64,000 nucleotides of DNA from positions 1 to 64,000 of IMG/VR virus record IMGVR_UViG_3300023174_000042; one strand, given 5' to 3'. The notes under the pieces are model-generated. The model was not told the DNA's origin and did not search any database. It saw nothing but the letters and a program-made list of their open reading frames with translations. Each line of letters starts with the position of its first letter. Positions within the stretch are counted from its first letter, which is position 1. Below, one piece after another: positions 13,501 to 51,928 of the stretch. Made by a program: the position numbers and the translations under genes.

Positions 13501-13700
13501 AAAAACAAATATACGTAAGTTATTTGAATTAAAAAAAATAAATTGTAAAAAAAATAAAAAATTAGAAAAAATAAAATAAGAAGTATTATCACAGTAAGGT
13601 TTTTATTTTCATTCCACATATATGAAAAAAATTCATAAATATCGATCAATAAAAATCTTAAAACAAATGAAGTAAGAACTATTATAAATATTAAAATCAT
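13497..13700 (-). CDS. small membrane protein
   Basis: Very hydrophobic; overlaps both neighbours by 4 nt. Confidence 0.55.
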   Translation of the reverse strand: MILIFIIVLTSFVLRFLLIDIYEFFSYMWNENKNLTVIILLILFFLIFYFFYNLFFLIQITYVYLFL

Positions 13701-17897: not shown

Positions 17898-18305
17898 TTA
17901 TTTTTTAATTTTTACAGTATCAACAGGAATTAAGGTTACTTTTGTAACACCTCTTTTAATAAAATTAAGTTTTTTAGCCGTTCCATAACTAAGATCAATA
18001 ATAAATTTTGAACTTTTTGGTAGTCTGTCATTAACTTTAACATAACATACTGAGTCGTTGTTTTGATTTACAACTTTTAGAATTGTTCCAAACTTAAAGT
18101 GTTTATGAGCGGCCGTTAAACTATCGGCATGAAATCTTTCACCTGAAGCAGTTAATCTTCCTGTCCAATGTTGTCCGTAATAAGATGCGGTTCCTTCGTA
18201 ATTATTTGGTGTTGATATAAAAGAAACAAAAAATAATGAAGTAATTAAGATAAGTTTATTTAAAATTCCAATTTTTGTATTTAGTTTCGATTTTTCTTTT
18301 TCCAT
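17898..18305 (-). CDS. rlpA: RlpA-like lytic transglycosylase (DPBB fold)
   Basis: GTASYYG...TASGERF...LTAAHK...KVNDR...IIDLSY. Confidence 0.85.
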   Translation of the reverse strand: MEKEKSKLNTKIGILNKLILITSLFFVSFISTPNNYEGTASYYGQHWTGRLTASGERFHADSLTAAHKHFKFGTILKVVNQNNDSVCYVKVNDRLPKSSKFIIDLSYGTAKKLNFIKRGVTKVTLIPVDTVKIKK

Positions 18306-19783: not shown

Positions 19784-19993
19784 TTAGAATCTGTAAGATG
19801 TGTATTTTTCGATTGCCTTTTTTGTGTTTTCTCCAGCAATACCATCTTCAGTTAATCCAGCATTGAAACAAGAATTTAATTTTTTTTGAACTTGCATAAC
19901 TTGATCTGAAGTTTGTTCATTTAAAATTGAACTTTCGATTAAATTATTTTTTAATCTTTTATATTGGTCTTCGGTTAGTTTAATTTTACTCAT
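19784..19993 (-). CDS. small leader-bearing protein with peptidoglycan-binding-like motif
   Basis: VMQVQKKLN...LTEDGIAGENTKKAI matches the L..DGI.G..T..AI pattern. Confidence 0.6.
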   Translation of the reverse strand: MSKIKLTEDQYKRLKNNLIESSILNEQTSDQVMQVQKKLNSCFNAGLTEDGIAGENTKKAIEKYTSYRF

Positions 19994-20007: not shown

Positions 20008-20832
20008 TTAAGCGATGAATGTTTGATATGCATCTTTAGTTATTGCTGGGCCAACTTCGGGTGTTGGTGCTCCTGTTGAAGTTCCTGCTGGTGTTGTTGT
20101 TTGTTGAGATGAACCAACAGTCTTACACTTAGATTCAATTTCTTTCATAATTGTATTAAAATCAAAGGTATATCTTGTTGATTTACTACCACCTTTTTTA
20201 GAAGTAGTTGTTTTTTTTACTTGATTTACTTGATTTACTTGATTTACTTGTTGTGTTTTTGGTGTTTTTGCCGCGACTTTTGCCAACTCTCTTGATTTTC
20301 TAACAGCAGTAAGTAATGGTTGATACACAAATTCGTTCCATTGTTCATCATCATCAAAATTTAGGTCTAAAAAATCAAACAATTTTCTACCTGGATGATT
20401 TTCAGCAAATCTTGTTGAAAGGGCACATAAATCAGGTATAGTTGGAATTGATTTAAGGGCTTTCTTAATTGCTTCTTCATTTGTGTTATATCCACCAACA
20501 CCTCCAGCATCCCATATTATTTTTACAAGTTTATCCAATACGTTTCCATTTAAAGTTTGTGGACCAACACCTTGAGCTTTACAAGCTTGGAAAATTTTTT
20601 TAACACCTTCGCTTGAACCATATGATTGACCCAATAATCCTAAAGAAGCTCCTATCACCGCTCCTGGAATACCATATAACTTGAATCCTAAAGCAGCACT
20701 TCCTACAACACCTGATGAAATTTGTTCGTTTAGATTGTTGTTATTTTTTTTCTCGTTTAAGAAAAATTCTTTATTATGAAGAGACAAAATTCTTTTTGAT
20801 TCTTCTTCTGTTAGTATAAAATTGTTTCTCAT
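20008..20832 (-). CDS. leader-bearing protein with glycine-zipper segment and annexin-like repeat
   Basis: GIPGAVIGASLGLLG; GGYNTNEEAIKKAL...DLCAL...GRKLFDFL. Confidence 0.5.
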   Translation of the reverse strand: MRNNFILTEEESKRILSLHNKEFFLNEKKNNNNLNEQISSGVVGSAALGFKLYGIPGAVIGASLGLLGQSYGSSEGVKKIFQACKAQGVGPQTLNGNVLDKLVKIIWDAGGVGGYNTNEEAIKKALKSIPTIPDLCALSTRFAENHPGRKLFDFLDLNFDDDEQWNEFVYQPLLTAVRKSRELAKVAAKTPKTQQVNQVNQVNQVKKTTTSKKGGSKSTRYTFDFNTIMKEIESKCKTVGSSQQTTTPAGTSTGAPTPEVGPAITKDAYQTFIA

Positions 20833-23637: not shown

Positions 23638-23869
23638 TGTTGATTTTTTGTTTGAGTTGTTCGATGTGGTGTTCGAGATACCATTTTGCTTTGGATAAAT
23701 CTTCCAATTCTTTGTTTTTTCCTTTTTTTCCTGCACGACTTATATATTTTATTGTATTTCCTAAACTAAACCCTAGATCCCAAGCATCGATCACTTTAAT
23801 GGCTTCGTAAGTGTTATCTTCTCCGCCATAATGTTGTGGGTGATTTACTTGTTCTTTATTGTTTTCCAT
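23621..23869 (-). CDS. DUF3310 (SaV-like) protein
   Basis: VNHPQHY...LGNTIKYISRAGKK...EDL.KA.WYL. Confidence 0.85.
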   Translation of the reverse strand: MENNKEQVNHPQHYGGEDNTYEAIKVIDAWDLGFSLGNTIKYISRAGKKGKNKELEDLSKAKWYLEHHIEQLKQKINNEQGN

Positions 23870-25079
23870 TTAAATCAAATTTAATTTCTTCAGTTGGTAT
23901 ATTTGATCCTTTCATGGTTTCTGAATCTATCAAATAATCTTCATCATTTTGATATTCATTTAATAGTTCATTACTTGTTAATGTTCCATATTTTTTATCT
24001 AAATCATTTACATCAACTTTATAATTAATTTTATACTTCATTTCATTAATTGCTTCAGCATTTTTTAATGAAAGAACAATTTGATTTATAATTTTATAAG
24101 GGTCTGCGTTTGATCCTGGTCTTCTATCTTCTAAATAACCTGTCCAATCTTCTGCCGTAGATTGTGGAACTCTAATCGATGCCCCTCTATCTGATACACC
24201 CCAACTAAACTTATCAATAGATTGTGTTTCAAATTGTCCTGTTAGTCTTAAATCGTTTTGTGATCCATAATTTTTAATATGTTCATAATGTCTTGATTCA
24301 AAACTTGAAAATAAAGATTTAAAGTATTCTTCTCTTTCAGTAAAACTTGTATTGTTTTTTTGGTTTCTCATTAAATCGGTTGAAAAGTTTGTGTGAAGTC
24401 CTGATCCGTTCCACTCTCCGTGTGTGATTGGTTTGGGGTGTAATTCAATGTGATATCCATATTTTTCTGAAGTTTTTAATAGAAAATATCTTGTCATCCA
24501 AAGATCATCTCCTGCTTGTAATTTACCTTGTGAAAATACTTGATACTCCCACTGACCTAAAGCAACTTCTGCGTTTATACCTGTAATGTTGATTCCGTAA
24601 TCTAAACACATATTCAAATGTTCATCAACAAAGTCACGACCAATTACGTTATGTCCAACCCCACAATAATATTCACCCTGACCTTTTAAAATATTTCTTT
24701 TATGACCTAAAATGTTTCCATTAACTTCTTCTCGAATAAAATATTCTTGTTCAAAACCAAACCAAAGATCTTCATATCCTTCAGCGACTTTAGCTCTTTT
24801 ATTAGATTCGTGTGGTGTTCCATCAGGATTTAAAACTTCGCATAAGACATAAATTGTTGATTGCATATTTCTAATATAATGTCTTACTGGTTTTAACATT
24901 CGATCTGAATTTCCTGTTTCTGCTTGCGATGTAGATGAACCATCGAAGTTCCAAGTTGGAAAATTGCCATCTAAAAAAGCGGTAGCTACTGAATCATAAT
25001 CAACAACTTTAACTTTGCTTCTTAAATTTGGTTCTGGTTTATATCCATCTAACCATACATACTCTAATATAATTTTCAT
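23856..25079 (-). CDS. glnII: glutamine synthetase type II with C-terminal extension
   Basis: EYVWLDG, FDGSST, GFEQEY, EVALGQWEYQ, WNGSGLHTNFST, RLTGQFET, RGASIRVP, YLEDRRP. Confidence 0.9.
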   Translation of the reverse strand: MKIILEYVWLDGYKPEPNLRSKVKVVDYDSVATAFLDGNFPTWNFDGSSTSQAETGNSDRMLKPVRHYIRNMQSTIYVLCEVLNPDGTPHESNKRAKVAEGYEDLWFGFEQEYFIREEVNGNILGHKRNILKGQGEYYCGVGHNVIGRDFVDEHLNMCLDYGINITGINAEVALGQWEYQVFSQGKLQAGDDLWMTRYFLLKTSEKYGYHIELHPKPITHGEWNGSGLHTNFSTDLMRNQKNNTSFTEREEYFKSLFSSFESRHYEHIKNYGSQNDLRLTGQFETQSIDKFSWGVSDRGASIRVPQSTAEDWTGYLEDRRPGSNADPYKIINQIVLSLKNAEAINEMKYKINYKVDVNDLDKKYGTLTSNELLNEYQNDEDYLIDSETMKGSNIPTEEIKFDLNGKQ

Positions 25080-25892: not shown

Positions 25893-27095
25893 TTAACTTG
25901 ATCTCATTACAAAATACCAATCACCATTTACCTGTGTTTCAAACATTTCTCCATCATAAGAGTTTAGTAAATGACCATAACCATCACTATTTACGACAAT
26001 ATCTGTAACCTCATCTAAATCAACAAAATCCATTATGAAATTTTTTTCATAACCGTAGTTTTTAATAAAATCATCTATGTCATCAACATATTCATTGACT
26101 CTATCGGCAACTTCTTGTTCAATCATATCTTCATCATAACCACCTTGTGGATCTTCTTTGATTTCTTCTATTGTTTCTTCTAACGTTTCTATTTTTTTTT
26201 CAATGTTTTCGTATTCTTCGTCAGACAATTCTTGATTTTTTAGTTTATTATTTAAGTTTTCTATAGTTTTTGTTAATTGATCCACTTGATGTTGTTGATT
26301 TACAGATAGTTGAAGTGGTATATCATAACTTTCGGGATCGTCTCTAATAATATCTTCATAAAAACTTTCTAACCAACTATTCCACTGTTCTCTATCAATT
26401 GCTTGATCCCACACCCAACTCATAAATGCCTCATAACCTAAGTCATCTACTATACTTTCAACATATTCTCTAGCGGCACTATCTAACTCATCTTGAGTAT
26501 AAACATCATATGTGTCTGGTTGTAAAGTATCATCACCTAACCATTCGTATTGTTTTCCACCGTAGTTTCCACGACCACTAGGATAAATAAAATACTTATC
26601 TTCTTCTATTTCTTCACCATTTTCATCTTCGTATAAAGTTGGGACTCCTTCTTCTACTAAAAATTCGTATAATGCTTCTGTTCTTTCAGATTCATCATCA
26701 CCGTTTTCAACATTCCATTCATCATCTTTTCTATATTCATCAAGTTCTGAAATTTTAGATTCTCGTTGTTTTTTTAGCTTTATTGTATTCATTGTTGATC
26801 CCCAATCACTAATGTATCGATCAACAGTAATACCATTAAGATGTGGGACGTTGGTTCCAGAAATATCTAATCTTCCCATAACTCTTACAATACCTGTAAG
26901 TGGTCCAACATTTTTGAAGTTTCTAAGATCTAAATCACCGTTAATTACAATACCTTTACCACGATATGGTTTAAGTTTTGAAATTCTTTCTGCTATTCCT
27001 CCAACATCTTCTAATGTTTCTAAATATTGTTCAGGAGTCAATGTTACAAGATTGTCATCTTGTTCCAACAAGAAATTTTTTATAAAATTTTTCAT
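25893..27095 (-). CDS. acidic late-class protein with short LRR-like N-terminal segment
   Basis: TATTTATA 4 nt before ATG; leader MKNFIKNFLLE; GDLDLR...GRLDISGT. Confidence 0.7.
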   Translation of the reverse strand: MKNFIKNFLLEQDDNLVTLTPEQYLETLEDVGGIAERISKLKPYRGKGIVINGDLDLRNFKNVGPLTGIVRVMGRLDISGTNVPHLNGITVDRYISDWGSTMNTIKLKKQRESKISELDEYRKDDEWNVENGDDESERTEALYEFLVEEGVPTLYEDENGEEIEEDKYFIYPSGRGNYGGKQYEWLGDDTLQPDTYDVYTQDELDSAAREYVESIVDDLGYEAFMSWVWDQAIDREQWNSWLESFYEDIIRDDPESYDIPLQLSVNQQHQVDQLTKTIENLNNKLKNQELSDEEYENIEKKIETLEETIEEIKEDPQGGYDEDMIEQEVADRVNEYVDDIDDFIKNYGYEKNFIMDFVDLDEVTDIVVNSDGYGHLLNSYDGEMFETQVNGDWYFVMRSS

Positions 27096-27437: not shown

Positions 27438-28337
27438 ATGAACTCCCTTCACGAAGATATAAGAAGAATAAAAAAATTAATGAATCTACTTGAGGGCGAA
27501 CAACTCTATTTAGATTTAGATTTTGGCGAAAAGGACCAAAACAAAATTACAATTAATAGTCCTGAATTTAGTAAAGCGTTTAAAGAAAAAGTTTTTTTTA
27601 TATTAAAGGATATATACGGAAATACAAATTGGTCAAATCAAAAGGGTAAAGGAACAAGAGGTCGTGGTGGATTTGTAAATTTATACACTGTCTATGATTT
27701 AATGAAACAAAAAGGACTTGATGACTATGAAAAAGAAGGTGGTGATTGGTCAATAATAAATTATTTTGACACAAATCCACAAGTAAGAAAATATTTAGTA
27801 AATCTATGGAGAGCTGAGACTTCTAATGAATTGAAAAATGAAGAAAGTATTAAAGATTTTATTTTATGGATGTCAAGAAATAGAAATAAAATTTTCAAAG
27901 AAGGTCCTATACTTAAAAATTTGGTAGATTTGAATGCAACCTCTCTTTATAACGGAGAGCTAAATGAAAGAAAGGCTCACGAATATTTGTCAAAAGTTTT
28001 AAAAGAACTTCCTGATTGGGAACTTTTGAAAAGGTCTTTACCAGGTTCTACAAATGACAGAAAAGGTATTGACATCAAAATGAAAAATAAAAAAACAAAT
28101 AATGAGGCCGATTTTCAAGTAAAACCTTTATCAAACTTTGAAAAAACAAAAGATGGTTATTTGATTACTTCATATAATATAGTTGGTTTGAATGAAAAAC
28201 CTGTAGATTATTTTATATTTGCTTCTCACAATGTTGATGACGTATATATATTTAAAAATATAATAGGAAATTATGAAATTTTAAGCGATACAAAAGTTTT
28301 ATTTAAGGATAAACCTATAGAGTTTAAGTATTTATAA
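27438..28337 (+). CDS. leader-bearing protein with putative PD-(D/E)XK nuclease domain
   Basis: GELNE...DRKGID...FQVKP; TATTTATA at 27415-27422. Confidence 0.5.
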   Translation: MNSLHEDIRRIKKLMNLLEGEQLYLDLDFGEKDQNKITINSPEFSKAFKEKVFFILKDIYGNTNWSNQKGKGTRGRGGFVNLYTVYDLMKQKGLDDYEKEGGDWSIINYFDTNPQVRKYLVNLWRAETSNELKNEESIKDFILWMSRNRNKIFKEGPILKNLVDLNATSLYNGELNERKAHEYLSKVLKELPDWELLKRSLPGSTNDRKGIDIKMKNKKTNNEADFQVKPLSNFEKTKDGYLITSYNIVGLNEKPVDYFIFASHNVDDVYIFKNIIGNYEILSDTKVLFKDKPIEFKYL

Positions 28338-33488: not shown

Positions 33489-33845
33489 TTATCTTATATT
33501 AATTCCAAGTTTATCAAAAGTTAACCAATCTGGCATTTCTTCTTTTCTTGCCTTGGGGTTTTTCTTTGGTCCTGGTTTTGGTCTATATGGAGTTCCGGGT
33601 TTATTTGGTTTTGTTGGTGTTTTAATTCCCGGTCTAACAGGTGTTTCAATTTCTCTGTTTTCAAAAGTTTCATCTTTAAGATAATTTAAATCCTCTTCTT
33701 CTTCATTCCACTCTTCATCCATTTCAATTTCTTCAAAATCCACATCTTCAGATTCAAATTGTTCTTGTTCAGAAATTACACGACCTCTATTGTAATTAAA
33801 AAGATATTTAATATCCTTTAATTCCTCGTTTAATTTATTTTTCAT
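33489..33845 (-). CDS. leader-bearing protein with acidic and Pro/Lys-rich segments (start reassigned to MKNKLNE)
   Basis: TATTTATT at 33861-33868; leader ends VISE. Confidence 0.7.
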   Translation of the reverse strand: MKNKLNEELKDIKYLFNYNRGRVISEQEQFESEDVDFEEIEMDEEWNEEEEDLNYLKDETFENREIETPVRPGIKTPTKPNKPGTPYRPKPGPKKNPKARKEEMPDWLTFDKLGINIR

Positions 33846-33878
33846 AGATATTTTTTTTTTAATAAATATCAAGGTTTT

Positions 33879-34163
33879 TTATTCTGGCACCATATAATAA
33901 TGATAACCCAAAGAATAATACAAAAATTGTCCTTTTTTTCTCAAAACATCATTTAAATTTTCTCGATTATCAACTTTAACACCAACAATTTTGCGTCCTT
34001 TAATTAGTTTTCTTCCATGGTGTGTATTTAATACATCTTCAACCGGATCCAAATAGTATTTAAGTTTTTTAATTAAAGACTTTTTATCTCCAACAGGACT
34101 AATGTCGTATTGTTTGCAAAGTAATTTGATTTCGGGTAATTCGAGTTCGTTTAGATCTTCCAT
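33879..34163 (-). CDS. SAP/HeH-like DNA-binding domain protein
   Basis: LELPEIKLLCKQYDISPVGDKKSLIKKL; TATCTTTG 4 nt before ATG. Confidence 0.55.
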   Translation of the reverse strand: MEDLNELELPEIKLLCKQYDISPVGDKKSLIKKLKYYLDPVEDVLNTHHGRKLIKGRKIVGVKVDNRENLNDVLRKKGQFLYYSLGYHYYMVPE

Positions 34164-34181: not shown

Positions 34182-34421
34182 TTATTTTATTTGACCAAAA
34201 GTGAAATTTGAAAAATAATTTTTGTATTTAGCATCAAAGTAGTTCCAAGTTGGTTTTTTATTCATTTCTTTATCATAGAAGCCTTTTGTATATGCTTCAT
34301 TGATAAGTCTTTTTTCATCTTCTTTAACTTGATTTTTTAATATCGTTAAAGCCAACTTTGTTTCTTCAGAAAGTCCTTCTGTTTTTGATAAATCTATAAT
34401 TTTTTTTTCAATTGGTCCCAT
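34182..34421 (-). CDS. hypothetical protein
   Basis: ORF track. Confidence 0.7.
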   Translation of the reverse strand: MGPIEKKIIDLSKTEGLSEETKLALTILKNQVKEDEKRLINEAYTKGFYDKEMNKKPTWNYFDAKYKNYFSNFTFGQIK

Positions 34422-34440: not shown

Positions 34441-35028
34441 TTAAATTTCTTTTAGATCAAGATCCACATCAATTGGTATTCCGTATTTTTCTAACTTTTT
34501 GTAAAAAAAGTCATAAACCTCACTTCTTAAATAAGCAAGAAGATCTCCAGTCTCATAATTACCCTGAGCCTCTAAATAAGCAGCTTCAATCGTATCATTT
34601 ACTTCTATTTCTCTATCAGTTCCTTCTTCATACATGTTGAAGTTCATTGTTCCTTGATCGTCAACATACACAAAAATATCAACTCCAAAATCTTCTCCTA
34701 ATCTACCAAACTGATTTACTTCAATAACCTTAATTCTTGTATCAAGATTACCCCAACTACTTTTCAGATCATATATTTTATCATCAATTTCATTTTTTAA
34801 TTTTTTAAATAGGTTATTAAAACCACCGTTGTATTCATACCAAATGGGTCTAATAAGTTGGAAGTCTTCGTTTGTATTTTTTCTAATGTCTGTAATGTCA
34901 TATATCACATCATCAAGATGTGGTTCTTCACCCATCTTTTTTTGTTTATTCCATACCGTATAGCAAAGTTTTCGAAGGTTATCTTCGGTTAATCTATTAT
35001 ATTGTTTTTCTGTAATTATTATTTTCAT
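34441..35028 (-). CDS. MKIIITE-leader cassette protein 5
   Basis: ATG 35028 overlaps upstream stop (TAATG); MKIIITEKQYNRLTE. Confidence 0.8.
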   Translation of the reverse strand: MKIIITEKQYNRLTEDNLRKLCYTVWNKQKKMGEEPHLDDVIYDITDIRKNTNEDFQLIRPIWYEYNGGFNNLFKKLKNEIDDKIYDLKSSWGNLDTRIKVIEVNQFGRLGEDFGVDIFVYVDDQGTMNFNMYEEGTDREIEVNDTIEAAYLEAQGNYETGDLLAYLRSEVYDFFYKKLEKYGIPIDVDLDLKEI

Positions 35029-35378
35029 TACCAATCTGTTCTTGGATTTTCGTTTATAACATTAAGTAATTTGAATTTGAAATTATTTTTCCCTAAATAG
35101 TTTTCCAAATTTAATTTTAAGTCCCACAAATAGTCACCAACATCAAATGTGTCAAAAATTGTATCTATATAAATAATTATTCCTAACTCAACAACATTAT
35201 CAGTCTTGTATGCCGTTACCACATCAATTTTTGTAATCGCTTCGTAATTATCCCCATATCCACCTTCATCATAATAATCTTCTTCTTTTATGTTATCAGC
35301 AATGTCTTTCCAAGCCATATCAACCGCATTTTGAAATGATATAGTTTTTAATTGTGATTCTGTTATTATTATTTTCAT
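35028..35378 (-). CDS. MKIIITE-leader cassette protein 4
   Basis: MKIIITESQL; TATTTATT 4 nt before ATG. Confidence 0.8.
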   Translation of the reverse strand: MKIIITESQLKTISFQNAVDMAWKDIADNIKEEDYYDEGGYGDNYEAITKIDVVTAYKTDNVVELGIIIYIDTIFDTFDVGDYLWDLKLNLENYLGKNNFKFKLLNVINENPRTDW

Positions 35379-35380
35379 TT

Positions 35381-35932
35381 CTAATAAATAGTAACCAAAG
35401 GAACCGTTACATAATATCCTGTAACAGGTAAAATTATTTCATTCATGCAATCTTGAACAACATCATTAACTTCTTCTTGGATTTCCCAACCTATATCTTC
35501 ATCCTCCAAAGCTTGATCTAAGGTTAGATGTCTTCCATCCTCCATAAGTGTTACGGAACCTCCAGGTAGAGTTTTTCCATATAGAAAAACATCATAATCT
35601 CTATATTCCATATTAGTGATTTCCCACTCAAAATCATAACCACCAACTAATCTTTCACTAAAATCTTTTGTTGAAAATTTCTTGTTTTTTAATGTATTTA
35701 TAAATTTTTTAACAAATGCCTCATCCCCAACTAATTCTTGAAATTCTGTTTGAGCGTGTAACTTATCGGTAAATTCGGTTATACCCCAAAATTCAAGTTC
35801 ATCTCTATCAAATCTAATTTTGTTACCTTTTTCTAACTCTTTTTTCCAATACTTAATAACCGCACCAATACCTTTATTTCGGTAAGATTCTTTAATAAGA
35901 CTATATTGTTTATTAGATATTATTACTTTCAT
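35381..35932 (-). CDS. MKIIITE-leader cassette protein 3
   Basis: MKVIISNKQYSLIKE. Confidence 0.8.
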   Translation of the reverse strand: MKVIISNKQYSLIKESYRNKGIGAVIKYWKKELEKGNKIRFDRDELEFWGITEFTDKLHAQTEFQELVGDEAFVKKFINTLKNKKFSTKDFSERLVGGYDFEWEITNMEYRDYDVFLYGKTLPGGSVTLMEDGRHLTLDQALEDEDIGWEIQEEVNDVVQDCMNEIILPVTGYYVTVPLVTIY

Positions 35933-36255
35933 AATTCCGCTTTGATATATTTTACATCAACATTAAATTTATTTTCAAAAGAGTTTTTAATCATATCTAA
36001 CACTTTTTCTTTTTTGATTGGGAACCAAGATTCTAAGTTGTTTAAATATTTTTTTGATATCCACAATCTACCATCAGATTTATCATATTCAATAAACGGC
36101 TCGTTATCAATGTTCCAAACATTTCTCTTATCCCAAATAACAATATAATAATCAACATAAGAAGGTTCATTTTCATCTAAGGTATCATCTACGAGTGATT
36201 TAATAAAATCATTCAATAGTTTTTTTTTCTGTGATTCTGTAATTATTATTTTCAT
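35929..36255 (-). CDS. MKIIITE-leader cassette protein 2
   Basis: MKIIITESQKKKL. Confidence 0.8.
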   Translation of the reverse strand: MKIIITESQKKKLLNDFIKSLVDDTLDENEPSYVDYYIVIWDKRNVWNIDNEPFIEYDKSDGRLWISKKYLNNLESWFPIKKEKVLDMIKNSFENKFNVDVKYIKAEL

Positions 36256-36257
36256 GA

Positions 36258-36632
36258 CTATACAATATTAGCCCCACTTACCTCTTTTATTTCAATATCA
36301 GGAAAAAGTCCTTTGAAGTAATCATAAACTGCGTTTTTTAAGTGTCTTGACATTATATGAGAAGGTATATAATCTTCCATATCTCTATCTATTGAATAAT
36401 CGTAATATAGTGATTTTGATTCTTTTCTATACACAAATAAAGGTTCCCCGTTTTCGTTCATCAAATATATTGAGTTGTGAACCTCACCCCAACTTTTAAC
36501 ATCTTTAGAAATGGTCTTTAAAAACAACTTCTTATATTTTGGGTATTCATCCTCATACTTAGCATCAAAACGATCTCTTCTATAAGTTTCGTTGATTAAA
36601 TCAAGTTGATGTTGGGTTACAATGATTTTCAT
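36258..36632 (-). CDS. MKIIITE-leader cassette protein 1
   Basis: MKIIVTQHQLDLINE; TATTTATC 4 nt before ATG. Confidence 0.8.
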   Translation of the reverse strand: MKIIVTQHQLDLINETYRRDRFDAKYEDEYPKYKKLFLKTISKDVKSWGEVHNSIYLMNENGEPLFVYRKESKSLYYDYSIDRDMEDYIPSHIMSRHLKNAVYDYFKGLFPDIEIKEVSGANIV

Positions 36633-36654
36633 ATAAGATAAATACTTTATAAAA

Positions 36655-36690
36655 GAAAAAACCCCCGATCAAAAGAAAGAAGGGGGGTTA
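36655..36690 (-). terminator. intrinsic terminator
   Basis: ACCCCC...GGGGGGT stem with U tract on the minus strand. Confidence 0.6.
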
Positions 36691-36710
36691 TGTTTTTATT
36701 TAATTTAATA

Positions 36711-38093
36711 TTAACTATGTGTAAATAAGTTGAAGTCCTCATCTTCTTCAGCTCTTCTGAAAACAGAATCAGGTAGAACTCTTTTTGGATCAGATCCTCC
36801 TAAGTTTAAAACCATAAGGTTTGGCATATCACCAATACATTCAGGTAGTTTTTGTAAATCAGGATTATTAACTAATGATAGATATTGTAAATTTTGTAAA
36901 CCACAAATTGCTTCAGGTAAAGAAGCCACGCACCCAACAAAGTTAATTGCACTTAGATTTTTGAACCTACCGATGTCATTTGGAATATTAAGTGATAGTT
37001 TATCTTTTGAAGAATTTTTAAAGGTAAATCTTTGTAAAGATTGAGGTAAGGTCGCAAAAAACTCATCGAATCCATAAAGTGCGATAAACTTAGACGCCGA
37101 ATCACCTGGATAATCAATAACCACTTTTTCACCTTTCTCACCTGCTAATGACTTCATAAACTCAGGTTTGAAGAATTGTTTTAGACCTTCTTCGTTTGTA
37201 TTTAAAAATTCAATCAAATTGATTTGTCTATCATCAGCATCCATGAATTGATTATCAGGGAAGTGGAACTGATAACGATTTGCTGGAAGTCCTGAAACTT
37301 CACCAGTTTCTTTTCCATAAGATTTAAAAGATGTTGGTGTGTTTGGAATTACAACATATAAAGGTCCTTTAGCGATATATCTTTCAAACCAACTATATCC
37401 TGGTGATGAGGTGCACCAATTGGTTTCTCCTCTTCTTGCTTCATTATGAGATCCACCGTAGAAACATGCCGCTTCTTTTCCTAATGGCCCTGTGTTTGAT
37501 ATTTTAGCAACCGTCCAATCTTGACCTCTATAAACGATGTCAGCTCCAGGGTGAGCAAATGTCTGAGAAGCCTCTTTTTTCTCAGCGGCAGTTGCTTTAG
37601 TTTTTTCTAAACTGAAATCTTTAACTTGATCATATAAAGTCTCAGGAGTTAGTTTATTTATATCTCTAAACTCTTGAGGTAATCTATTTTTGAATCTTTC
37701 AAACTTTTGAAGGTTTGTCGTAACTTTATATAAGTCTTCCATGAAAAGGTCTTGAAATGACTTTAAAGCCGCCTTATATTGACCTGATTGTGGATCAGAA
37801 ATCATTAATGGGTGATCTGCTGGTAACTTAGGTGTAACAAAGTTTTTTAATAACCACTGAGCGTATTTTCCAATTTTAACCCTCTCCATTTGTTCAGGTT
37901 TAACATTATTAACGTCCATTCCGTCCGGAACTTTTGTTGTCGGATCTGCGGCGATAATTGTAAATAAAGTTTCGAAAGGCATTATACCTCTTTGACCTTT
38001 TTCTTTTGGTTTTACGAACTTATCAAATAATACTTGAAATCTTGAGCTTTCAACAATTAAATCTCTTAAAATGTTTGTAAATCTTAACGACAT
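36711..38093 (-). CDS. late-class protein with TxWCT motif and C-terminal leucine-rich repeats
   Basis: ETNWCTSS, YQFHF; LPQSLQRF, IPNDIGRFKNLSAINF, LPEAICGLQNLQYLSL, LPECIGDMPNLMVLNL. Confidence 0.75.
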   Translation of the reverse strand: MSLRFTNILRDLIVESSRFQVLFDKFVKPKEKGQRGIMPFETLFTIIAADPTTKVPDGMDVNNVKPEQMERVKIGKYAQWLLKNFVTPKLPADHPLMISDPQSGQYKAALKSFQDLFMEDLYKVTTNLQKFERFKNRLPQEFRDINKLTPETLYDQVKDFSLEKTKATAAEKKEASQTFAHPGADIVYRGQDWTVAKISNTGPLGKEAACFYGGSHNEARRGETNWCTSSPGYSWFERYIAKGPLYVVIPNTPTSFKSYGKETGEVSGLPANRYQFHFPDNQFMDADDRQINLIEFLNTNEEGLKQFFKPEFMKSLAGEKGEKVVIDYPGDSASKFIALYGFDEFFATLPQSLQRFTFKNSSKDKLSLNIPNDIGRFKNLSAINFVGCVASLPEAICGLQNLQYLSLVNNPDLQKLPECIGDMPNLMVLNLGGSDPKRVLPDSVFRRAEEDEDFNLFTHS

Positions 38094-38132: not shown

Positions 38133-38984
38133 TTAATAGTTCATTATCAATATTTCCTCTCCCATGTTTTGTTTCTCACCTTTTTTAGCGGAAGCGGCCT
38201 TTGCAAACTCTTTTTTAACCCAAGTGTATTGGTCTTCGGGGAACCATTCGTGAAGAAGTTCAAAGTCATAATAGGATAATGAAAACTTACCTTTAACTTC
38301 GTGTAATACATTTGCCAATCTTTCATGGTCTTGACGATCAAAGTCGTGATTGGAGTAGTATGATCCTTCTCCCACAACATAATAGGGTGGGTCAACATAA
38401 AAATATGTATTTGGTGAATCATATTTTTCTATCACTTCCTGAAAGTCCATATTTTCAACAAAAGTAATAGATTCGAACATCTTTTGCCACTTTTCATTTT
38501 TTAATTTGTTTATGAAAGATGTGAATTTAGAATGGTATTTACCTTTTAAATCAATAAACTTTGATTTTGAAGGATTGGCTCCTGAAAAAACTTGTGTTAA
38601 AACATAGATATATTTTGCGGCAACTTCATAGTCATAAGCCTTTGGGCTGAAGTTTTCTTCGAATATTTCAGCCTGAAACCTTATAAATTGTTCTTCACAA
38701 ATTGGATCTGTTGGTCGTATATCTTTTTTTTGAACAACTAATTTTTCACACTCTTGAAGTAATTTTTGGTGATCTTTCAAACATTGATACATATTAAAGT
38801 TCAACTTGTTAAAGTCGTTATACACAACGGTTTTTAAATTTGGGTAATCTTCCAAGTTCATCTTAAAAAATGTCCAAAATTGACCACTAAATGGTTCTAC
38901 AAATGTCTCAATGTCTTTAGGGATGTTAGGTATTATTAATTGTGGGGCGATTTTTGATTTACCTCCGATATAACTTACGCACAT
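38133..38984 (-). CDS. Dam-like (D12 class) N6-adenine DNA methyltransferase
   Basis: YIGGKSK, VEPFSG, YND, YVDPPY. Confidence 0.85.
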   Translation of the reverse strand: MCVSYIGGKSKIAPQLIIPNIPKDIETFVEPFSGQFWTFFKMNLEDYPNLKTVVYNDFNKLNFNMYQCLKDHQKLLQECEKLVVQKKDIRPTDPICEEQFIRFQAEIFEENFSPKAYDYEVAAKYIYVLTQVFSGANPSKSKFIDLKGKYHSKFTSFINKLKNEKWQKMFESITFVENMDFQEVIEKYDSPNTYFYVDPPYYVVGEGSYYSNHDFDRQDHERLANVLHEVKGKFSLSYYDFELLHEWFPEDQYTWVKKEFAKAASAKKGEKQNMGEEILIMNY

Positions 38985-39114: not shown

Positions 39115-39276
39115 ATGGAAGAACAAAAAGCAACAGAAGTTAAATGTAAAGCGTGTGAAAGTAGCAGACAAGTTAAAAATACCCAAACGTTTGTTTTATT
39201 ATTTGGTGGCATTTTTACTTTTTTCGCAATCTATGGATTAATTTCAGCAATTAGAGATTTTATCAATATTTTTTAA
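39115..39276 (+). CDS. 53-aa CxxC plus transmembrane peptide (not in ORF track)
   Basis: MEEQKATEVKCKACESSRQVKNTQTFVLLFGGIFTFFAIYGLISAIRDFINIF. Confidence 0.65.
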   Translation: MEEQKATEVKCKACESSRQVKNTQTFVLLFGGIFTFFAIYGLISAIRDFINIF

Positions 39277-40196
39277 TCTCTGTCAAATTTAACAAACTGA
39301 TTAACAATTAGGTCACCAACTGTGTCTAATTTGAACCCTTTGGACTTAACTCTTAAGGGTTTTGATGTATCAATATGTTTTGGTAATTTAATGTTTAATG
39401 TCCCTTCTGGATGTGGAATTGTAATATTTCCTACTTTCAAGTCTTCCAAGTTTAAATAAGCATCATAAACAAGATGGTTATCCACTTTATTAAACCCGTC
39501 TTGTGGTTTAAGATCAATTCTAACAACCAAATCGCCATAAATTCCATGTTTATAGTCTCCCATCCCTTGAAGTCTTAGAAATTGTCCGTTGTCGATTCCA
39601 TGTGGCAATGAAATATCCAAAACTTTCATTTCGGGTTTTGATCCGACACCGGCACACATAAAACAAGGGTTGATTAAAATTGATCCGGTTCCATGACAAC
39701 TATCACACCCCATTTGTATTAATTGGACAAACATTCCTGATCCAACTTGTTTTACAACGCTTCCTGAACCTCCACAAGTCTGACATGGTTTTTTATCCCC
39801 ACCTGAACCATTACAGGGTTGACACATAGTTTGTCTTTTATAAGACAAGGTGTGCTTTCCTCCATTGAAGGAGTTTAATGTTCCAATATTTACGGTAATG
39901 TTTGACGTGTGTGTCTGTCTTTGTTGTTTTGTTGTTCTTTGATTAAAAAAACTATTAAACATATCATTCATATTAAATCCACCGCCAAATGGATTTTTTC
40001 TTTGATTGTCGTATTGTTGTCTTTTTTGTTCATCTCCTAGTATATCATAAGCAGATGATATTTTTTTAAAAAGATCTTCATTTCCTCCGGCATCGGGATG
40101 ATTTTCTTTTGCTAACTTTCTATATTTTTTTTTAATTTCTTCTTGTGTTGCGGTTTCTTCCAAACCCAAAACATCATAAAAATTTTCATTATTCAT
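39273..40196 (-). CDS. dnaJ: DnaJ/Hsp40 co-chaperone
   Basis: J-domain HPD; four CxxCxGxG repeats; C-terminal GDL.V domains. Confidence 0.9.
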   Translation of the reverse strand: MNNENFYDVLGLEETATQEEIKKKYRKLAKENHPDAGGNEDLFKKISSAYDILGDEQKRQQYDNQRKNPFGGGFNMNDMFNSFFNQRTTKQQRQTHTSNITVNIGTLNSFNGGKHTLSYKRQTMCQPCNGSGGDKKPCQTCGGSGSVVKQVGSGMFVQLIQMGCDSCHGTGSILINPCFMCAGVGSKPEMKVLDISLPHGIDNGQFLRLQGMGDYKHGIYGDLVVRIDLKPQDGFNKVDNHLVYDAYLNLEDLKVGNITIPHPEGTLNIKLPKHIDTSKPLRVKSKGFKLDTVGDLIVNQFVKFDRD

Positions 40197-48929: not shown

Positions 48930-49730
48930 TTATAAATAATCGAATAATTCTGAAGAATCATTTCTAAGTCTTCGAAGGGCCTTTTCTTTGATTTGTCGAA
49001 CACGTTCTTTGGTTAGACCAAAATCAGATCCAATATCTTCTAAAGTTCTTGGAGTTCCAGTAAGTCCAAAATAATCACCAACAATCGACTTTTCACGATC
49101 ATCCAAAACATCCAAAAGTTTTAATAATTTGTCTTTAAGAATGTCTTTTGTATCAAATATCGCGTCCGGAAGTTCGGCATCCTTATTTGCGATCATATCC
49201 AACAAAGTATCACCATCTTCATTTATATTCATATCAAGATCAATCATAGATGGAAGAGAAGCAAACTTATCTTCAAGTTTTTTTCCGGTTTGCTCAACCT
49301 CTTTTTTTGCCTTATGAAGATCCTGAACCACATTAACGGGAAGACGAATTGTTCTTGAGTTATCATTTAACGATTGGATGATAGATTGTTTTACCCACCA
49401 TACCGCATATGATATAAATCTCAAATCTTTGTTCCAATCAAAGTTTTTAATTGCCTTCATTAAACCCAAATTTCCTTCAGCAATCAAGTCAGATAAATCA
49501 AGTCCCTGATTTTGATATTGTTTTGCCACCGTAATTACAAAACGAAGATTTCCTGTTAAAAGTTCTTCTTCAACTTTTTGTTTTTCTTTTAGTTCAATAT
49601 TATCAGACTTCATTTTTACCGCCAGTTCGCGTTCTCTTTCTGCGGTCATTACCTTAATTTTTCGAATATCTTTAAGGTAGTGATAAATTTCATCCTGATT
49701 AATTGGGGATCCTGCGCTTTTTTCTTTCAT
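48930..49730 (-). CDS. rpoD: RpoD-like sigma70 factor lacking region 1.1
   Basis: YLKDI (1.2), NLRFVITVAKQY, DLIAEGNLGL, RFISYAVWW, RTIRLP, region 4 TLEDIG..FGLTKERVRQI. Confidence 0.9.
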   Translation of the reverse strand: MKEKSAGSPINQDEIYHYLKDIRKIKVMTAERERELAVKMKSDNIELKEKQKVEEELLTGNLRFVITVAKQYQNQGLDLSDLIAEGNLGLMKAIKNFDWNKDLRFISYAVWWVKQSIIQSLNDNSRTIRLPVNVVQDLHKAKKEVEQTGKKLEDKFASLPSMIDLDMNINEDGDTLLDMIANKDAELPDAIFDTKDILKDKLLKLLDVLDDREKSIVGDYFGLTGTPRTLEDIGSDFGLTKERVRQIKEKALRRLRNDSSELFDYL

Positions 49731-49739
49731 ATATTATAT

Positions 49740-50276
49740 TTAAATTGTTTTTGAGTATTCTTCTAACTTTTGTTTTTCTAAATCAGTTAAGGAGTTCATA
49801 CCTTTTTCGATAATCTTATCAAGCAATTCGTCCAAAGTCATATTACAGGTCAAAGGTTGTTTGAAGTGGTTAATAATCTCTGTGTATTGTTCAAATGGAT
49901 TAACGAACTTTCGTCTTTTATTAAAACTTTCTTTTAACTGGTTTGTGTCATCAATATTATTGTTTTTTGGTGAAGTCTTTTTTAAGGTCATTAGATGATC
50001 TAAATTTTCTTGACCAAAGTTTGATGCGTAATCCTTAGACTTTTTTGTAACAAAATATTCAAAGTTTCCAACCTCCTCAGAGATAAACAAAATAACATCA
50101 CTAACGTCTTGAAATTCTCCTTTGTATCCGAAATGAAATACCGCATGTGTTGGTCCATACATAAATTTTACTTGACCGCTTGTCATGTGTTCGGCAATTT
50201 TTGTTCCAATTTCTTGTGTTTTTTTCTCGGCGTTTTTTACAGTTTTATCAAAGTAAGCAAAAAGTAAGTAATTCAT
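49740..50276 (-). CDS. hypothetical protein with C-terminal DUF6576-like motif
   Basis: LDELLDKIIEKGMNSLTDLEKQKL. Confidence 0.6.
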   Translation of the reverse strand: MNYLLFAYFDKTVKNAEKKTQEIGTKIAEHMTSGQVKFMYGPTHAVFHFGYKGEFQDVSDVILFISEEVGNFEYFVTKKSKDYASNFGQENLDHLMTLKKTSPKNNNIDDTNQLKESFNKRRKFVNPFEQYTEIINHFKQPLTCNMTLDELLDKIIEKGMNSLTDLEKQKLEEYSKTI

Positions 50277-50473: not shown

Positions 50474-51928
50474 TTAACATAATTTATATATATTTTCATA
50501 CTTAAATACTTTAGTACGATATACAGTATTAATAGAATGAATTGTACGTATATAAAAATCCTTATCGAAATTTGTATCAGTATTTAAATAGAAATCCTCC
50601 GAGTCAATCATATTTATGTTAGAAATAACAATATTTTTACAAATATTTTCACAATCATTCACCTTATTAATTCTCGATAATGAATGATCTGTAAATATAT
50701 CACAACCTTTTTCTTCTTGTTGTATAAAAATATATTTTCTATTAACATTTTGTAATTTATCGGATTCAACTAATCCGTGATATGTTGAGTTTGACCCCGC
50801 ACACCAATCAAGAATAATATCACCATCGTTAGTGAATGATGTAATAATGTCCCTCATTAATATAATTGATTTAGGAGTGTTAAACGTTTTTTCACCGTAT
50901 AGTTTCTTCAACACATCAGTTGCCTGTGTATTTCCATATTCAGTTTTATCCATAATGGTCTTCATAGGTTGGAATGTTTTTACTTTTTCCATGTAGTTGA
51001 TAACACCGTTATTTTCATGTAAAACATCATATGGTTTATTTTTATTTAAAATAGTCTCATATGTTGGTACCCATCTACCCCACTTTTCTCCATATTTTGG
51101 AAATATTACTTTATGAGTTTTAGAGTATTTCTCCTCAATATTTTTAACATATTCACTAATTTTATTATTCATATCATCAGTGTATATTTTTGTTTTACTG
51201 TAGTCTTTACAGACATTATTAACAAACTTTTTTAGTAAAAGATATTCATTCTTACTTATTGTTGAGATTTTATTAGTTCCTTTTTCAATTAAGAATGGGT
51301 AAAATTGTCCTTGTCTATCGCAAACTAACTTTGCATTATATGCCAACAGACTTCTAGGTTTTACGTCTTTACCCTTGTCTTTACTTTCATTCAAAACACC
51401 TTCACCATATTCAAGTAAATTAATATTTTTAGCACAAACCACTAAATATTCATTAGTCGTTACTAAATCTTTTTTATTCCTTCTTCCACCACCACCTCTA
51501 TTTGACACAACAGTTGCAGTTGTTAATACATTTTTTTCACCAAAAACATCAACACATAAATTTTCCAAATTTCTTTTCTCATTGTGATCAATAGAAATAA
51601 CCATAACCCCATTATCGGAAAGTAGTTCTCTAACAATAATTAATCTAGGTAACATCCAAGAAATCCAATCTGAATGATAATTTAATGAATCGGTAGTATT
51701 AAATGTATCATTATAAATGAAATCCTCATTTCCGGTGTTATAAGGTACATCAGCATATGCTAATTTTATTTTTCCCTTATAAATGGAACTTAACCCTATT
51801 AATGATTGTAAATTATCACCTTTAACACCTAAAACATCAAATTCATCACTAAAATTAATGTTTGGAATTTTAACACCGTCTAAAATTTCTTTGTACTCGT
51901 TTGGTACTGTATTTTTATAAACTACCAT
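50474..51928 (-). CDS. mod: type III Mod-like DNA methyltransferase with variant motifs
   Basis: GDNL..L, YADVPYNTG (DPPY variant), SWMLPRL, ISID, FNTPKS, ILDWCAGSNST (DFFAGSGTT variant). Confidence 0.75.
   Translation of the reverse strand: MVVYKNTVPNEYKEILDGVKIPNINFSDEFDVLGVKGDNLQSLIGLSSIYKGKIKLAYADVPYNTGNEDFIYNDTFNTTDSLNYHSDWISWMLPRLIIVRELLSDNGVMVISIDHNEKRNLENLCVDVFGEKNVLTTATVVSNRGGGGRRNKKDLVTTNEYLVVCAKNINLLEYGEGVLNESKDKGKDVKPRSLLAYNAKLVCDRQGQFYPFLIEKGTNKISTISKNEYLLLKKFVNNVCKDYSKTKIYTDDMNNKISEYVKNIEEKYSKTHKVIFPKYGEKWGRWVPTYETILNKNKPYDVLHENNGVINYMEKVKTFQPMKTIMDKTEYGNTQATDVLKKLYGEKTFNTPKSIILMRDIITSFTNDGDIILDWCAGSNSTYHGLVESDKLQNVNRKYIFIQQEEKGCDIFTDHSLSRINKVNDCENICKNIVISNINMIDSEDFYLNTDTNFDKDFYIRTIHSINTVYRTKVFKYENIYKLC

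Follow-up and report, generated by a model that had tools for sequence, protein, structure and literature searches.

A phage gene array in which cassettes sharing an N-terminal leader are gained, lost and reordered at that leader

Introduction

Why should five neighbouring genes of a phage begin with nearly the same few amino acids when the remainder of the proteins they encode differs? This question arose from a window of 64,000 nucleotides (positions 1 to 64,000 of IMG/VR record IMGVR_UViG_3300023174_000042). Within it, an initial annotation made from the sequence alone had picked out a tandem array of five genes with a constant N-terminal tag and variable cargo. It proposed that the array is an expandable effector locus in which the tag both routes the protein and offers a recombination handle, by analogy with the hypervariable internal-protein locus of T-even phages, whose IPI* blocks a restriction enzyme. 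Here, we ask whether the array is real, how far the leader extends beyond it, how the locus varies among relatives, and what the leader peptide might do.

The window lies in a 272.6-kb virus from a lake. The virus belongs to the T4 superfamily, as it encodes a gp21-type prohead protease (Peptidase_S77, PF03420; 81 bits; G000:184046-184774, where G000 is this genome), a gp23-type capsid protein (E 1e-24) and a gp20 portal (Portal_T4; 258 bits). A scaffold protein is encoded at G000:182170-183693. The host is probably a member of the Bacteroidota. The gene content resembles that of the "moraphages", aquatic jumbo phages of Bacteroidota (PMC12619734), with which this phage shares a genome of about 270-300 kb, glutamine synthetase, DnaJ, ClpA (here a ClpA/B-type AAA+ protein), a sigma factor and T4-type core genes including the prohead core protease, with a T9SS sorting domain also present. 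This resemblance is one of gene content, source and genome size. No close cultured relative was found in the phage database, where the best terminase identity was 26-29%, and the locus had no nucleotide match and cargo E no homologue there.

Results

The five genes and their leaders

The observation made in the initial annotation is confirmed: five abutting genes on the minus strand (34441-36632) begin MK[IV]I[IV][TS].xQ, and their N-termini are exactly as it gave them. Cassette A (36258-36632; 124 aa) has the leader MKIIVTQHQLDLINE, with Gln at residue 7 but INE ending at residue 15 (INE-15), and is always first in the array. Cassette B (35929-36255; 108 aa) has the leader MKIIITESQ (ITE-7), and its stop codon overlaps the ATG of C (ATGA). 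Cassette C (35381-35932; 183 aa) has the leader MKVIISNKQYSLIKE (IKE-15) and is acidic (net charge -11). Cassette D (35028-35378; 116 aa) again has MKIIITESQ (ITE-7) and is very acidic (pI 4.2). Cassette E (34441-35028; 195 aa from the ATG at 35028) has the leader MKIIITEKQYNRLTE (ITE-7 and LTE-15), is acidic (net charge -15) and is always last.

The leader-coding DNA lies at 36606-36632 (A), 36229-36255 (B), 35906-35932 (C), 35352-35378 (D) and 35002-35028 (E), all on the minus strand. Both DNA identities that had been reported hold, with 35008-35028 identical to 36235-36255 (21/21) and 35353-35378 matching 36230-36255 at 25 of 26 positions.

The array is flanked by conserved genes on the same strand. 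Upstream is a 460-aa protein with C-terminal leucine-rich repeats, below Pfam cut-offs (36711-38093; 77-93% aa identity and syntenic in all relatives), and downstream is a 79-aa protein beginning MGPIEKK (34182-34421).

Other details of the initial annotation required correction. It had described the block as bounded by a terminator, but the terminator-like hairpin lies only on the upstream side, between the leucine-rich repeat gene and A (36660-36689, minus strand), where it is followed by a U-run (dG -16 kcal/mol, z -3.2; 0 of 200 shuffles fold as well). A simple terminator scan missed this large-loop hairpin. On the other side, E is followed after 19 nt by the next gene.

It had also noted internal TATTTAT motifs. 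On the coding strand there are three: at 36638-36644 and 35384-35390, each 5 nt before the ATGs of A and D respectively, and at 35169-35175 inside D. The box before D lies inside the 3' end of C, travels with cassette C, and in relatives then precedes D or a further cassette, F. As a bare 7-mer TATTTAT is not enriched in the window (61 observed against 48.7 +/- 7.9), and we treat it as promoter-like only because of its fixed 4-5-nt spacing to ATGs. The same box precedes terminase, baseplate-wedge and tail-fibre genes, whereas host-type TAnnTTTG promoters almost never precede tagged genes. Sigma-70-type promoter hits in the locus are no more frequent than in shuffled sequence (14 against 19.3). 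Late expression of the array is inferred only from a shared promoter-like box, and the RNA evidence consists of four 151-nt contigs in one metatranscriptome, for which DNA carry-over is possible.

Relatedness of the cargos

By eye, the bodies had been grouped into two loose paralogue pairs. Of these only C/E is supported. In AlphaFold models C and E have the same secondary-structure order and the same single BFVD neighbour (TM 0.75 and 0.63). An hhalign comparison of E against C gave 95.5% with the leaders included, but the shared leader had inflated this value, and with the leaders trimmed the signal was weak (E 0.005; 7% probability). Every other pair was null in profile-profile comparison, and BLASTP among the bodies gave no hit below E 0.09.

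These results bear on the possibility that the array is an ordinary tandem-duplicated paralogue family, diverged beyond recognition except at a constrained N-terminal structural element, so that there is no tag at all. The predicted fold shared by C and E, with its weak residual sequence signal, and the frequency of local duplication in jumbo phages are consistent with this view. However, the other pairs show no similarity, the sizes range from 29 to 518 aa, and the cargos include a lysozyme and Cys-rich, zinc-ribbon-like proteins. Moreover, the leader lies outside the confidently modelled fold, homologous bodies carry different leader types or none, and cassettes move as units between genomes. 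We therefore consider this explanation very unlikely.

No search returned a function for the cargos. Pfam and PHROGs searches with the five cargos and about 25 other tagged proteins gave no family apart from one lysozyme. Searches of the ESM Atlas by features and by shape returned only unnamed viral clusters, or TM below 0.5. Foldseek searches against PDB and AFDB found no neighbour, leaving E with an orphan predicted fold; hits to chimallin at TM 0.23 are rejected as noise.

The leader is found across the genome and the clade

The leader is not confined to five genes or to this locus, and in this respect the initial annotation underestimated its scale. The motif K[IV][IVL][IVL][ST][EQN].Q sits at residue 2 in 12 genes of a greedy gene set and in 14 genes of a six-frame scan of this genome, against 1 internal occurrence in 84,726 residues and 0.0003 expected from composition. 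At least 14 genes of this genome thus carry the leader, which is strictly N-terminal. In five genomes, the reversed pattern gave 0 hits against 44 forward hits. Related complete genomes carry 5-14 tagged genes each, and the viral collection holds at least 120 loci (149 ORFs), whereas prokaryote genomes have almost none. The cultured Flavobacterium phage immuto has no leader of this type (A-type), and literature searches for the leader strings found nothing relevant.

Sibling leader families bring the total to roughly 43 genes, or about 13% of the genome. A neighbouring gene (33489-33872, minus strand) has a C-type leader, MKNKLNEELKDIKYLF, on a body whose length varies between 118 and 190 aa in relatives. 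A 416-aa gene (18256-19506, minus strand) has a leader variant (MGNIIITKNQLKLITE), while its homologues in other phages carry the canonical MKIIITESQ leader. A basic protein with a D-type leader sits beside the capsid gene, and one tagged protein is a TM-lysozyme distinct from the canonical endolysin. This is thus a genome-wide and clade-wide leader system with several sibling leader types.

Cassettes are exchanged at the leader

Fixed gene content and order in all relatives, together with no virion association, had been named beforehand as what would refute the proposal, and the first half of this condition is clearly not what is seen. Thirteen genomes show eight cassette architectures between syntenic flanks. 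Every junction falls at the leader's ATG (-4 to +2 nt), and the only homology between swapped partners is the roughly 27-nt leader DNA. The 18 nt upstream of each leader are always the 3' end of whichever cassette precedes it, with 12 different adjacencies seen.

Among the relatives (numbered with the prefix L), B lies between D and E in L124/125 and after C' in L130-135, and its nucleotide identity is 93-97% in all genomes. D is 99% identical in amino acids and 96-98% in nucleotides wherever present, and is absent from L130-132, L134 and L135. In comparison, neighbouring genes are only 65-85% identical. Body A carries the alternative leader MKIIITEEQYNLINE in L129-L135, and an MKV/MKI variant swaps between B and C. 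Leaders in one locus share synonymous sites more than leaders in different loci (0.746 against 0.589; 0 of 5,000 permutations reached this), and metagenome contigs break or branch at the leaders.

Conservation acts on the peptide

One option is that conservation acts mainly at the nucleic-acid level, with an A/U-rich start region optimising translation initiation or re-initiation of tightly packed, Shine-Dalgarno-less genes, or with gene conversion alone maintaining a recombination site, and that the peptide itself has no function. In favour of this, cassettes abut or overlap and mostly lack their own promoters, leader codons show a slight excess of ATA and AAA, leaders within one locus are homogenised at synonymous sites, and the DNA identities described above are high. 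Against it, across genomes every synonymous codon is used, at about body frequencies, yet M-K-I-I-I-T-E-x-Q and L/I-13 stay invariant, and A/U-richness could be met by many other residues. The leader is also conserved on isolated, promoter-proximal genes, and sibling leader families differ in DNA but share the [LI]-x-E theme. We consider a purely nucleic-acid role very unlikely; synonymous sites vary freely, so selection acts on the peptide.

The AlphaFold models show a low-confidence leader region next to a confident body, with a pLDDT of 87.2 for E (residues 1-5 below 50) and 85.7 for C (leader blocks 58-59). Homologous bodies carry different leader types, or none, with variable linkers. A signal-peptide or lipoprotein role was rejected by inspection, because the leader is short and polar after five residues. 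Likewise, membership among polymorphic toxins (Rhs/CDI orphans) was rejected, because the constant part is only 9-16 aa, each cassette is a complete gene, and no immunity-like partner genes are evident.

The leader carries a gp21-type motif

The leader is bipartite, with [LI]-x-E at residues 7 and 15. All five genes of the array have at least one such site, although two of the five lack Glu-7, and 97 of 137 leaders have a second site, peaking at residues 15-16. Genome-wide, [LI]-x-E is enriched at N-termini (30% against 17%, p 3e-8) while the controls [LI]-x-D and [VFM]-x-E are not. However, this is a short motif in a Leu/Ile/Glu-rich proteome, and the enrichment statistics count paralogous, non-independent leaders.

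The published specificity of gp21 is L/I-X-E, the propeptides that act as T4 capsid-targeting sequences (CTS) are 10-19 aa, T4 Alt is cut at ITE-6 and LTE-619, and Asp at P1 blocks cutting but not targeting. The capsid propeptide of this phage carries IKE-23, LKE-44, LYE-51 and INE-60, about where the mature end of the T4 protein aligns. All four tag-bearing records that are at least 90% complete carry S77. A complex prediction for the protease with leader residues 1-40 gave no answer and is not used as evidence.

Discussion

In light of these findings, the interpretation offered in the initial annotation is partly supported. Comparison of genomes shows that the array is hypervariable and expandable, and that the leader DNA is the only homology between cassettes and serves as the crossover or gene-conversion point at which whole cassettes are inserted, deleted, permuted and exchanged between co-circulating phages; in this part we have high confidence. 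By contrast, that the array genes are of late type is inferred from the shared promoter-like box, and that the leader routes proteins into the virion, that it is cleaved and that the cargos are ejected are inferences by analogy. Taken as a whole, we hold the explanation to be about as likely as not.

What might the role of the leader be? Our leading but tentative reading, which we hold at slightly less than even, is that it is an N-terminal propeptide, MKIIITE(7)-x-Q-[YLF]-x-x-[LI]-x-E(15), that works like the T4 CTS. In this view it would bind the assembling prohead core so that unrelated cargos are packed into the head, the gp21-type S77 protease would then remove it by cutting after Glu in [LI]-x-E, and the mature cargos would be ejected with the DNA into the next host. 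The head module, the leader motif, the sites in the capsid propeptide, the tagged protein beside the capsid gene and the tagged lysozyme are consistent with this reading, as is the promoter-like box shared with virion genes. There is, however, no direct evidence of cleavage, virion location or ejection, the leader by inspection has no sequence similarity to the T4 CTS (MKTYQEFIAE) beyond the [LI]-x-E ending and the ITE of T4 Alt, and roughly 43 tagged genes, some of them large (529 and 1018 aa), is a large number for head-internal proteins. A role for the cargos in host take-over or anti-defence remains speculation by analogy with T4 IPI* and Alt.

Alternatively, the leader may be a recognition tag that mature proteins keep, read by a partner other than the prohead. 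This could be the ClpA/B-type unfoldase of the phage or its DnaJ (with host DnaK), giving timed unfolding, remodelling or degradation, or it could be a common host target. The unfoldase and DnaJ, the latter encoded close to the array, are both reported as typical of the moraphage lineage, the leader is flexible and exposed in the models, as degrons are, and the tagged genes would not all have to fit into the capsid. We nevertheless consider this unlikely, since no ClpP is encoded, since it does not explain the strict preference for Glu over Asp and for Leu/Ile over Val/Phe/Met at two fixed positions, which matches gp21 specificity, and since the shared promoter-like box links tagged genes to virion genes.

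The closest known system is that of the T-even internal proteins (IPI, IPII, IPIII) and Alt, with their CTS and polymorphic locus, and the analogy drawn in the initial annotation is apt. In both there is a phage of the T4 superfamily with a gp21-type protease, a short N-terminal leader with the L/I-X-E motif shared by otherwise unrelated small proteins (ITE-6 in T4 Alt, ITE-7 here), and a locus that differs between related phages. Here, however, the leader sequence is unrelated and has sites at residues 7 and 15, several sibling leader classes occur on roughly 43 genes per genome against a handful in T4, and the cassettes form tightly abutted arrays whose junctions are the leader itself, in a genome of about 270-300 kb whose host is probably of the Bacteroidota.

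A second comparison is with the PeSL (promoter-early stem-loop) mobile regulatory cassettes that mediate modular shuffling in T4-type phages (PMC2839356, PMC4122927). In both, short repeats in hyperplastic regions act as points of homologous exchange between otherwise unrelated ORFan genes, producing indels and replacements between close relatives, and a terminator-plus-promoter composite does sit upstream of cassette A and of several other tagged genes. Within the array, though, only the A boundary has a hairpin plus promoter-like box, and the interior junctions have no intergenic element. The exchanged homology lies inside the coding sequence, so it is constrained as both peptide and DNA, and the box resembles a late rather than an early type.

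Thirdly, in the giant phages phiKZ, 201phi2-1 and SPN3US, dozens of head proteins are cut after Glu at a three-residue motif by a diverged gp21 homologue, and paralogues such as SPN3US gp53/gp54 share identical N-terminal propeptides carrying two candidate sites. Those propeptides are mostly over 100 residues with the motif S/A-X-E, the phages belong to a different lineage (virion RNA polymerase, inner body), and cassette shuffling at the leader has not been described for them. The report on moraphages (PMC12619734) does not mention N-terminal leaders, paralogue arrays or internal proteins.

A bolder possibility, which we regard as unlikely, is that this clade runs a multi-class N-terminal address-label system. 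Four or five leader families (A, MKIIITExQ; B, MKRIIRLTESDLxRIVKRVIxE; C, MNLQEQIxRIKxLM; D, MKELIRHILKEET; and E-type, LIINEEEKxRILxLH) would direct a very large, rapidly exchangeable set of proteins into the capsid, and the classes might specify different amounts, layers or release order. Because the labels also act as recombination sites, any new gene that acquires a leader would become an injectable, horizontally tradable cassette, and the injected-protein set of uncultured phages could be read directly from sequence.

Whatever the role of the peptide, the locus is an unusually clean natural example of a coding micro-homology that doubles as a recombination site for whole-gene cassettes, which is relevant to how phage ORFan repertoires turn over and to why such regions fragment in metagenome assemblies. 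The leader could also serve as a packaging tag for engineering once a host system exists. If the leader is a capsid-targeting propeptide, a simple sequence rule (a leader plus [LI]-x-E at residues 7 and 15) would identify the proteins that an abundant, uncultured lineage of lake phages injects into Bacteroidota, and such proteins are the prime candidates for new host take-over and anti-defence functions. It would also show that the T4 CTS principle is old and has expanded greatly in large genomes.

Five abutting genes share an N-terminal leader

Here, we confirm that five genes abut one another on the minus strand of the window: A (36258-36632, 124 aa), B (35929-36255, 108 aa), C (35381-35932, 183 aa), D (35028-35378, 116 aa), and E (34441-35028, 195 aa from the ATG at 35028). 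Their products begin MKIIVTQHQ, MKIIITESQ, MKVIISNKQ, MKIIITESQ, and MKIIITEKQ, respectively, and the two DNA identities described in the initial annotation are exact (21/21 and 25/26). The observation made in that annotation therefore holds. The upstream edge of the array is marked by a terminator-like hairpin (about 36660-36689, dG -16 kcal/mol, z -3.2) and by a TATTTAT box 5 nt before the ATG of A, while there is no terminator at the downstream edge. A second TATTTAT box lies in the 3' end of C, 5 nt before the ATG of D.

The leader is not a chance resemblance and reaches well beyond these five genes. The motif occurs at residue 2 of 12 genes in our gene set, and of 14 ORFs in a six-frame scan, but only once internally in 84,726 residues, with 0.0003 occurrences expected by composition. 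A search of the viral collection with a degenerate DNA pattern for the leader returned at least 120 stretches, which hold 149 tagged ORFs, all at true ORF starts, with bodies of 29-518 aa. The same pattern found only 15 stretches in 596 Gb of prokaryote genomes, all on contigs of metagenome-assembled genomes. Five complete or near-complete genomes of the clade carry 5-14 copies each, while a reversed-pattern control found none. Thus, the feature is real, phage-specific, and much wider than the five genes.

The phage and its probable host

The window is bases 1-64000 of a virus record that is 272,576 bp long (30% G+C, CheckV completeness 93%) and encodes a Peptidase_S77 (T4 gp21-type) prohead protease, a gp23-type major capsid protein, a gp20-type portal, and a terminase whose nearest cultured relatives are only 26-29% identical. 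A 1345-aa protein (window 13697-17734), with an Ig-like CHU_C-associated domain and a C-terminal type-9-secretion sorting domain (Por_Secre_tail), points to a Bacteroidota host and suggests that the phage uses the host's secretion system. The DNA is found in many freshwater lake metagenomes. Among the auxiliary and take-over genes in the window (23856-25079, 39273-40196, 48930-49730, 38133-38984, 50474-51928) are glutamine synthetase, a full-length DnaJ, a sigma-70-family factor, and two DNA methyltransferases (Dam-type D12 and N6_N4). Judged by content rather than by phylogenetic placement, this is consistent with the published description of the 'moraphages' (PMC12619734), a paper that does not mention N-terminal leaders. 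The genome also encodes a ClpA/B-type unfoldase but no ClpP, and one alternative, which we consider unlikely, is that the leader is a retained tag read by this unfoldase or by DnaJ.

The locus is hypervariable and the leader is the joint

To ask whether gene content and order are fixed in relatives, the condition that would have spoken against an expandable locus, we retrieved twelve related loci using cargo E as the query (numbered L124 to L135). The flanking genes are syntenic, with the leucine-rich repeat (LRR) protein 77-93% identical and the 413-aa protein 81-89% identical. Between the LRR gene and the 79-aa gene, however, the arrays differ. The window has A-B-C-D-E, L124 and L125 have A-C-D-B-E, L126 has x-new153-A-B-C-D-E, L128 has x-A-B-C-F-D-E, L129 has x-A-C'-new134-F-D-E, L130, L131, L132, and L135 have x-A-C'-B-E, and L134 has x-A-F-E', while L133, which is cut and in which A is inferred from 18 nt, has A-D-E. 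In this notation F is a homologue of a gene that sits 228 kb away in this genome, and x is an extra 229-276-aa gene, with leaders such as MNRRLIINEEEKRRILNL or MKNLLNLTESEKSRILNL, that lies between the LRR gene and cassette A in most relatives (L126, L128-L132, L134, and L135); the window (36633-36710), L124, and L125 have only a 78-nt spacer there.

All cassette junctions are -4 to +2 nt. The 18 nt upstream of each leader are simply the 3' end of whichever cassette precedes, with twelve different adjacencies seen, and the only sequence that the partners share is the leader DNA ATGAAAATAATAATTACAGAATCACAA. Body A occurs with two different leader versions, and an MKV/MKI variant swaps between B and C. 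In addition, cassettes D (96-98% nt) and B (93-97% nt) are nearly identical in genomes whose neighbouring cassettes and flanks are 65-85% identical, which implies recent exchange of single cassettes. Contigs from independent lake metagenomes end or branch exactly at the leaders: one contig spans 35007-35378, and three different continuations meet at 35028. Gene content and order are therefore not fixed, and the proposal that the leader is a recombination handle is well supported, a conclusion in which we have high confidence.

Variability is also seen just downstream of the array. The leader-bearing gene at 33489-33872 keeps its first ~30 residues in its homologues in L124-L135, but its middle, an acidic and Pro/Lys-rich low-complexity part, varies from 118 to 190 aa between relatives. 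A small 94-aa protein (33879-34163) with an N-terminal SAP (DNA-binding) domain, scoring just under the Pfam cut-off, is conserved and syntenic just downstream of the array.

Selection acts on the peptide

Across genomes the leader uses every synonymous codon at roughly the frequencies seen in the bodies, while the amino acids are invariant. Within a locus, leaders share synonymous choices more than between loci (0.746 vs 0.589; none of 5,000 permutations reached this), which fits local gene conversion or recent duplication. Hence the DNA identity serves recombination, but the sequence is kept because of what the peptide does. A purely nucleic-acid-level role for the leader is, in our view, very unlikely.

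The leader is a separable module

The bodies of the 14 tagged proteins show no pairwise similarity (best E 0.09), and with leaders trimmed, profile comparisons are null except for a weak C-E signal. Homologues of cargo E mostly carry this leader, whereas diverged members carry a different leader type or none, and indels fall exactly between leader and body. Conversely, homologues of the 529-aa and 416-aa proteins of this genome, which carry other leaders here, carry MKIIITESQ elsewhere. AlphaFold models of E (pLDDT 87.2, pTM 0.81) and C (85.7, 0.77) place the leader in a low-confidence N-terminal extension, with the mean pLDDT of residues 1-10 being 45 and 59, against 85 or more for the bodies. 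That the array is an ordinary diverged paralogue family is likewise very unlikely in our estimation, although C and E have the same predicted secondary-structure order and the same single structural neighbour, an uncharacterised uncultured-phage protein, and are therefore one genuine remote paralogue pair. E, D, and C are strongly acidic (net -15, -11, and -11), but in the structure and family searches that we made no structure or family gives a function.

A possible T4-type capsid-targeting propeptide

What might the leader do? The reading we favour, though only tentatively, is that of a T4-type capsid-targeting propeptide. In T4, gp21 cuts after Glu in L/I-X-E, and the internal proteins (IPs) and Alt carry 10-19-residue N-terminal propeptides (CTS) that load them into the prohead core and are then removed. 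The first 10 residues of IPIII suffice for targeting, Asp at the cleavage position blocks cutting but not targeting, Alt is cut at ITE-6 and LTE-619, and T-even IPs are described as 'a highly diverse set... with only a conserved CTS' (PMC9026906, PMC5694885, PMC3012670).

In this phage, the same protease family is present and the leader reads ITE at residue 7. Of 137 leaders, 71% have a second [LI]-x-E, peaking sharply at residues 15-16, against 10-13% in deeper windows and 11% for the [LI]-x-D control. All five genes of the array have at least one site: INE-15 in A, ITE-7 in B, IKE-15 in C, ITE-7 in D, and ITE-7 plus LTE-15 in E. The capsid protein's own propeptide carries IKE-23, LKE-44, LYE-51, and INE-60, about where the mature N-terminus of T4 aligns. 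Genome-wide, [LI]-x-E is enriched in residues 4-15 (30% vs 17%, p 3e-8) and [LI][TS]E spikes at positions 7 and 9, while [LI]-x-D and [VFM]-x-E are not enriched, although these counts are dominated by paralogous leaders. We draw a distinction between the expandable locus and its recombination handle, which are supported by comparison of the related loci, and the cleavage of the leader, the location of the tagged proteins in the virion, and their ejection, which are inferred by analogy with T4; any function of the cargos is speculation by the same analogy. A 305-aa leader-bearing protein elsewhere in the record (256758-257675), with an internal transmembrane segment and a C-terminal phage-lysozyme domain, could be a virion-borne or ejected wall hydrolase; the genome also has a canonical endolysin (PG_binding_1 + Amidase_2, 269282-270166).

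Sibling leaders

The genome carries further N-terminal families, counted by eye: MKRIIRLTESDLxRIVKRVIxE (about 9 genes), MNLQEQIxRIKxLM (about 13 genes), MKELIRHILKEET (about 12 genes), and LIINEEEKxRILxLH (about 4 genes). A regex classifier that pools all leader types tags 43 genes in total, and no Pfam family covers any of these leaders. A second, much larger region outside the window (228000-264000 of the record; loci L138-L140) is dense with leader-bearing small genes, holding runs of MKRIIRLTESDL genes (234152-238341), MNLQEQI genes (240030-243170), and MKELIRHILKEET genes (243199-252778), mixed with MKIIITE genes. Gene 237417-237836 (MKIIITEDQYGQLTNLVKRVISE) is a hybrid of two leader types and bridges the first family to the leader of the array, while one member of the MKELIRHILKEET family sits beside the capsid gene. 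Within the window, further genes at 7706-8224, 18256-19506, 19784-19993, 20008-20832, 25893-27095, 27438-28337(+), and 33489-33872 carry variant or sibling N-terminal leaders: MGNIIITKNQLKLITE, MSKIKLTEDQYKRL, MRNNFILTEEESKRIL, MKNFIKNFLLEQ, MNSLHEDIRRIKKLM, and MKNKLNEELKDIKYLF.

Two promoter-like classes

Two distinct promoter-like classes are seen genome-wide, with examples at window 49731-49800 and 51929-51990 (upstream of genes 49740 and 51915). A phage-type (A)TATTTAT element without a -35 partner lies 4-5 nt from the ATG of about 44 genes, implying near-leaderless mRNAs, and these genes include the terminase, a baseplate wedge subunit, a tail fibre, and cassettes A and D. A separate Bacteroidota-type TAnnTTTG class, a TATATTTGTAGAAATAA element with 15-25-nt leaders, precedes a different gene set and almost never precedes tagged genes. 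This suggests, but does not show, co-expression of the tagged genes with virion genes; one lake metatranscriptome has short contigs on E, B, and A, for which DNA carry-over cannot be excluded.

Relation to known systems

The interpretation offered by the initial annotation is thus supported only in part: the expandable locus and the recombination handle are borne out, while routing of the proteins by the leader and anti-restriction activity are, on present evidence, no more than proposals. Both the T4 CTS/IP principle and T4-type modular shuffling are already known. In the literature we searched, we found no description of the features that set this system apart, namely a bipartite leader that is unrelated in sequence to the T4 CTS, the use of the leader itself as the crossover site in abutted arrays, and a genome-wide scale with several leader classes in an uncultured jumbo-phage lineage of probable Bacteroidota hosts.
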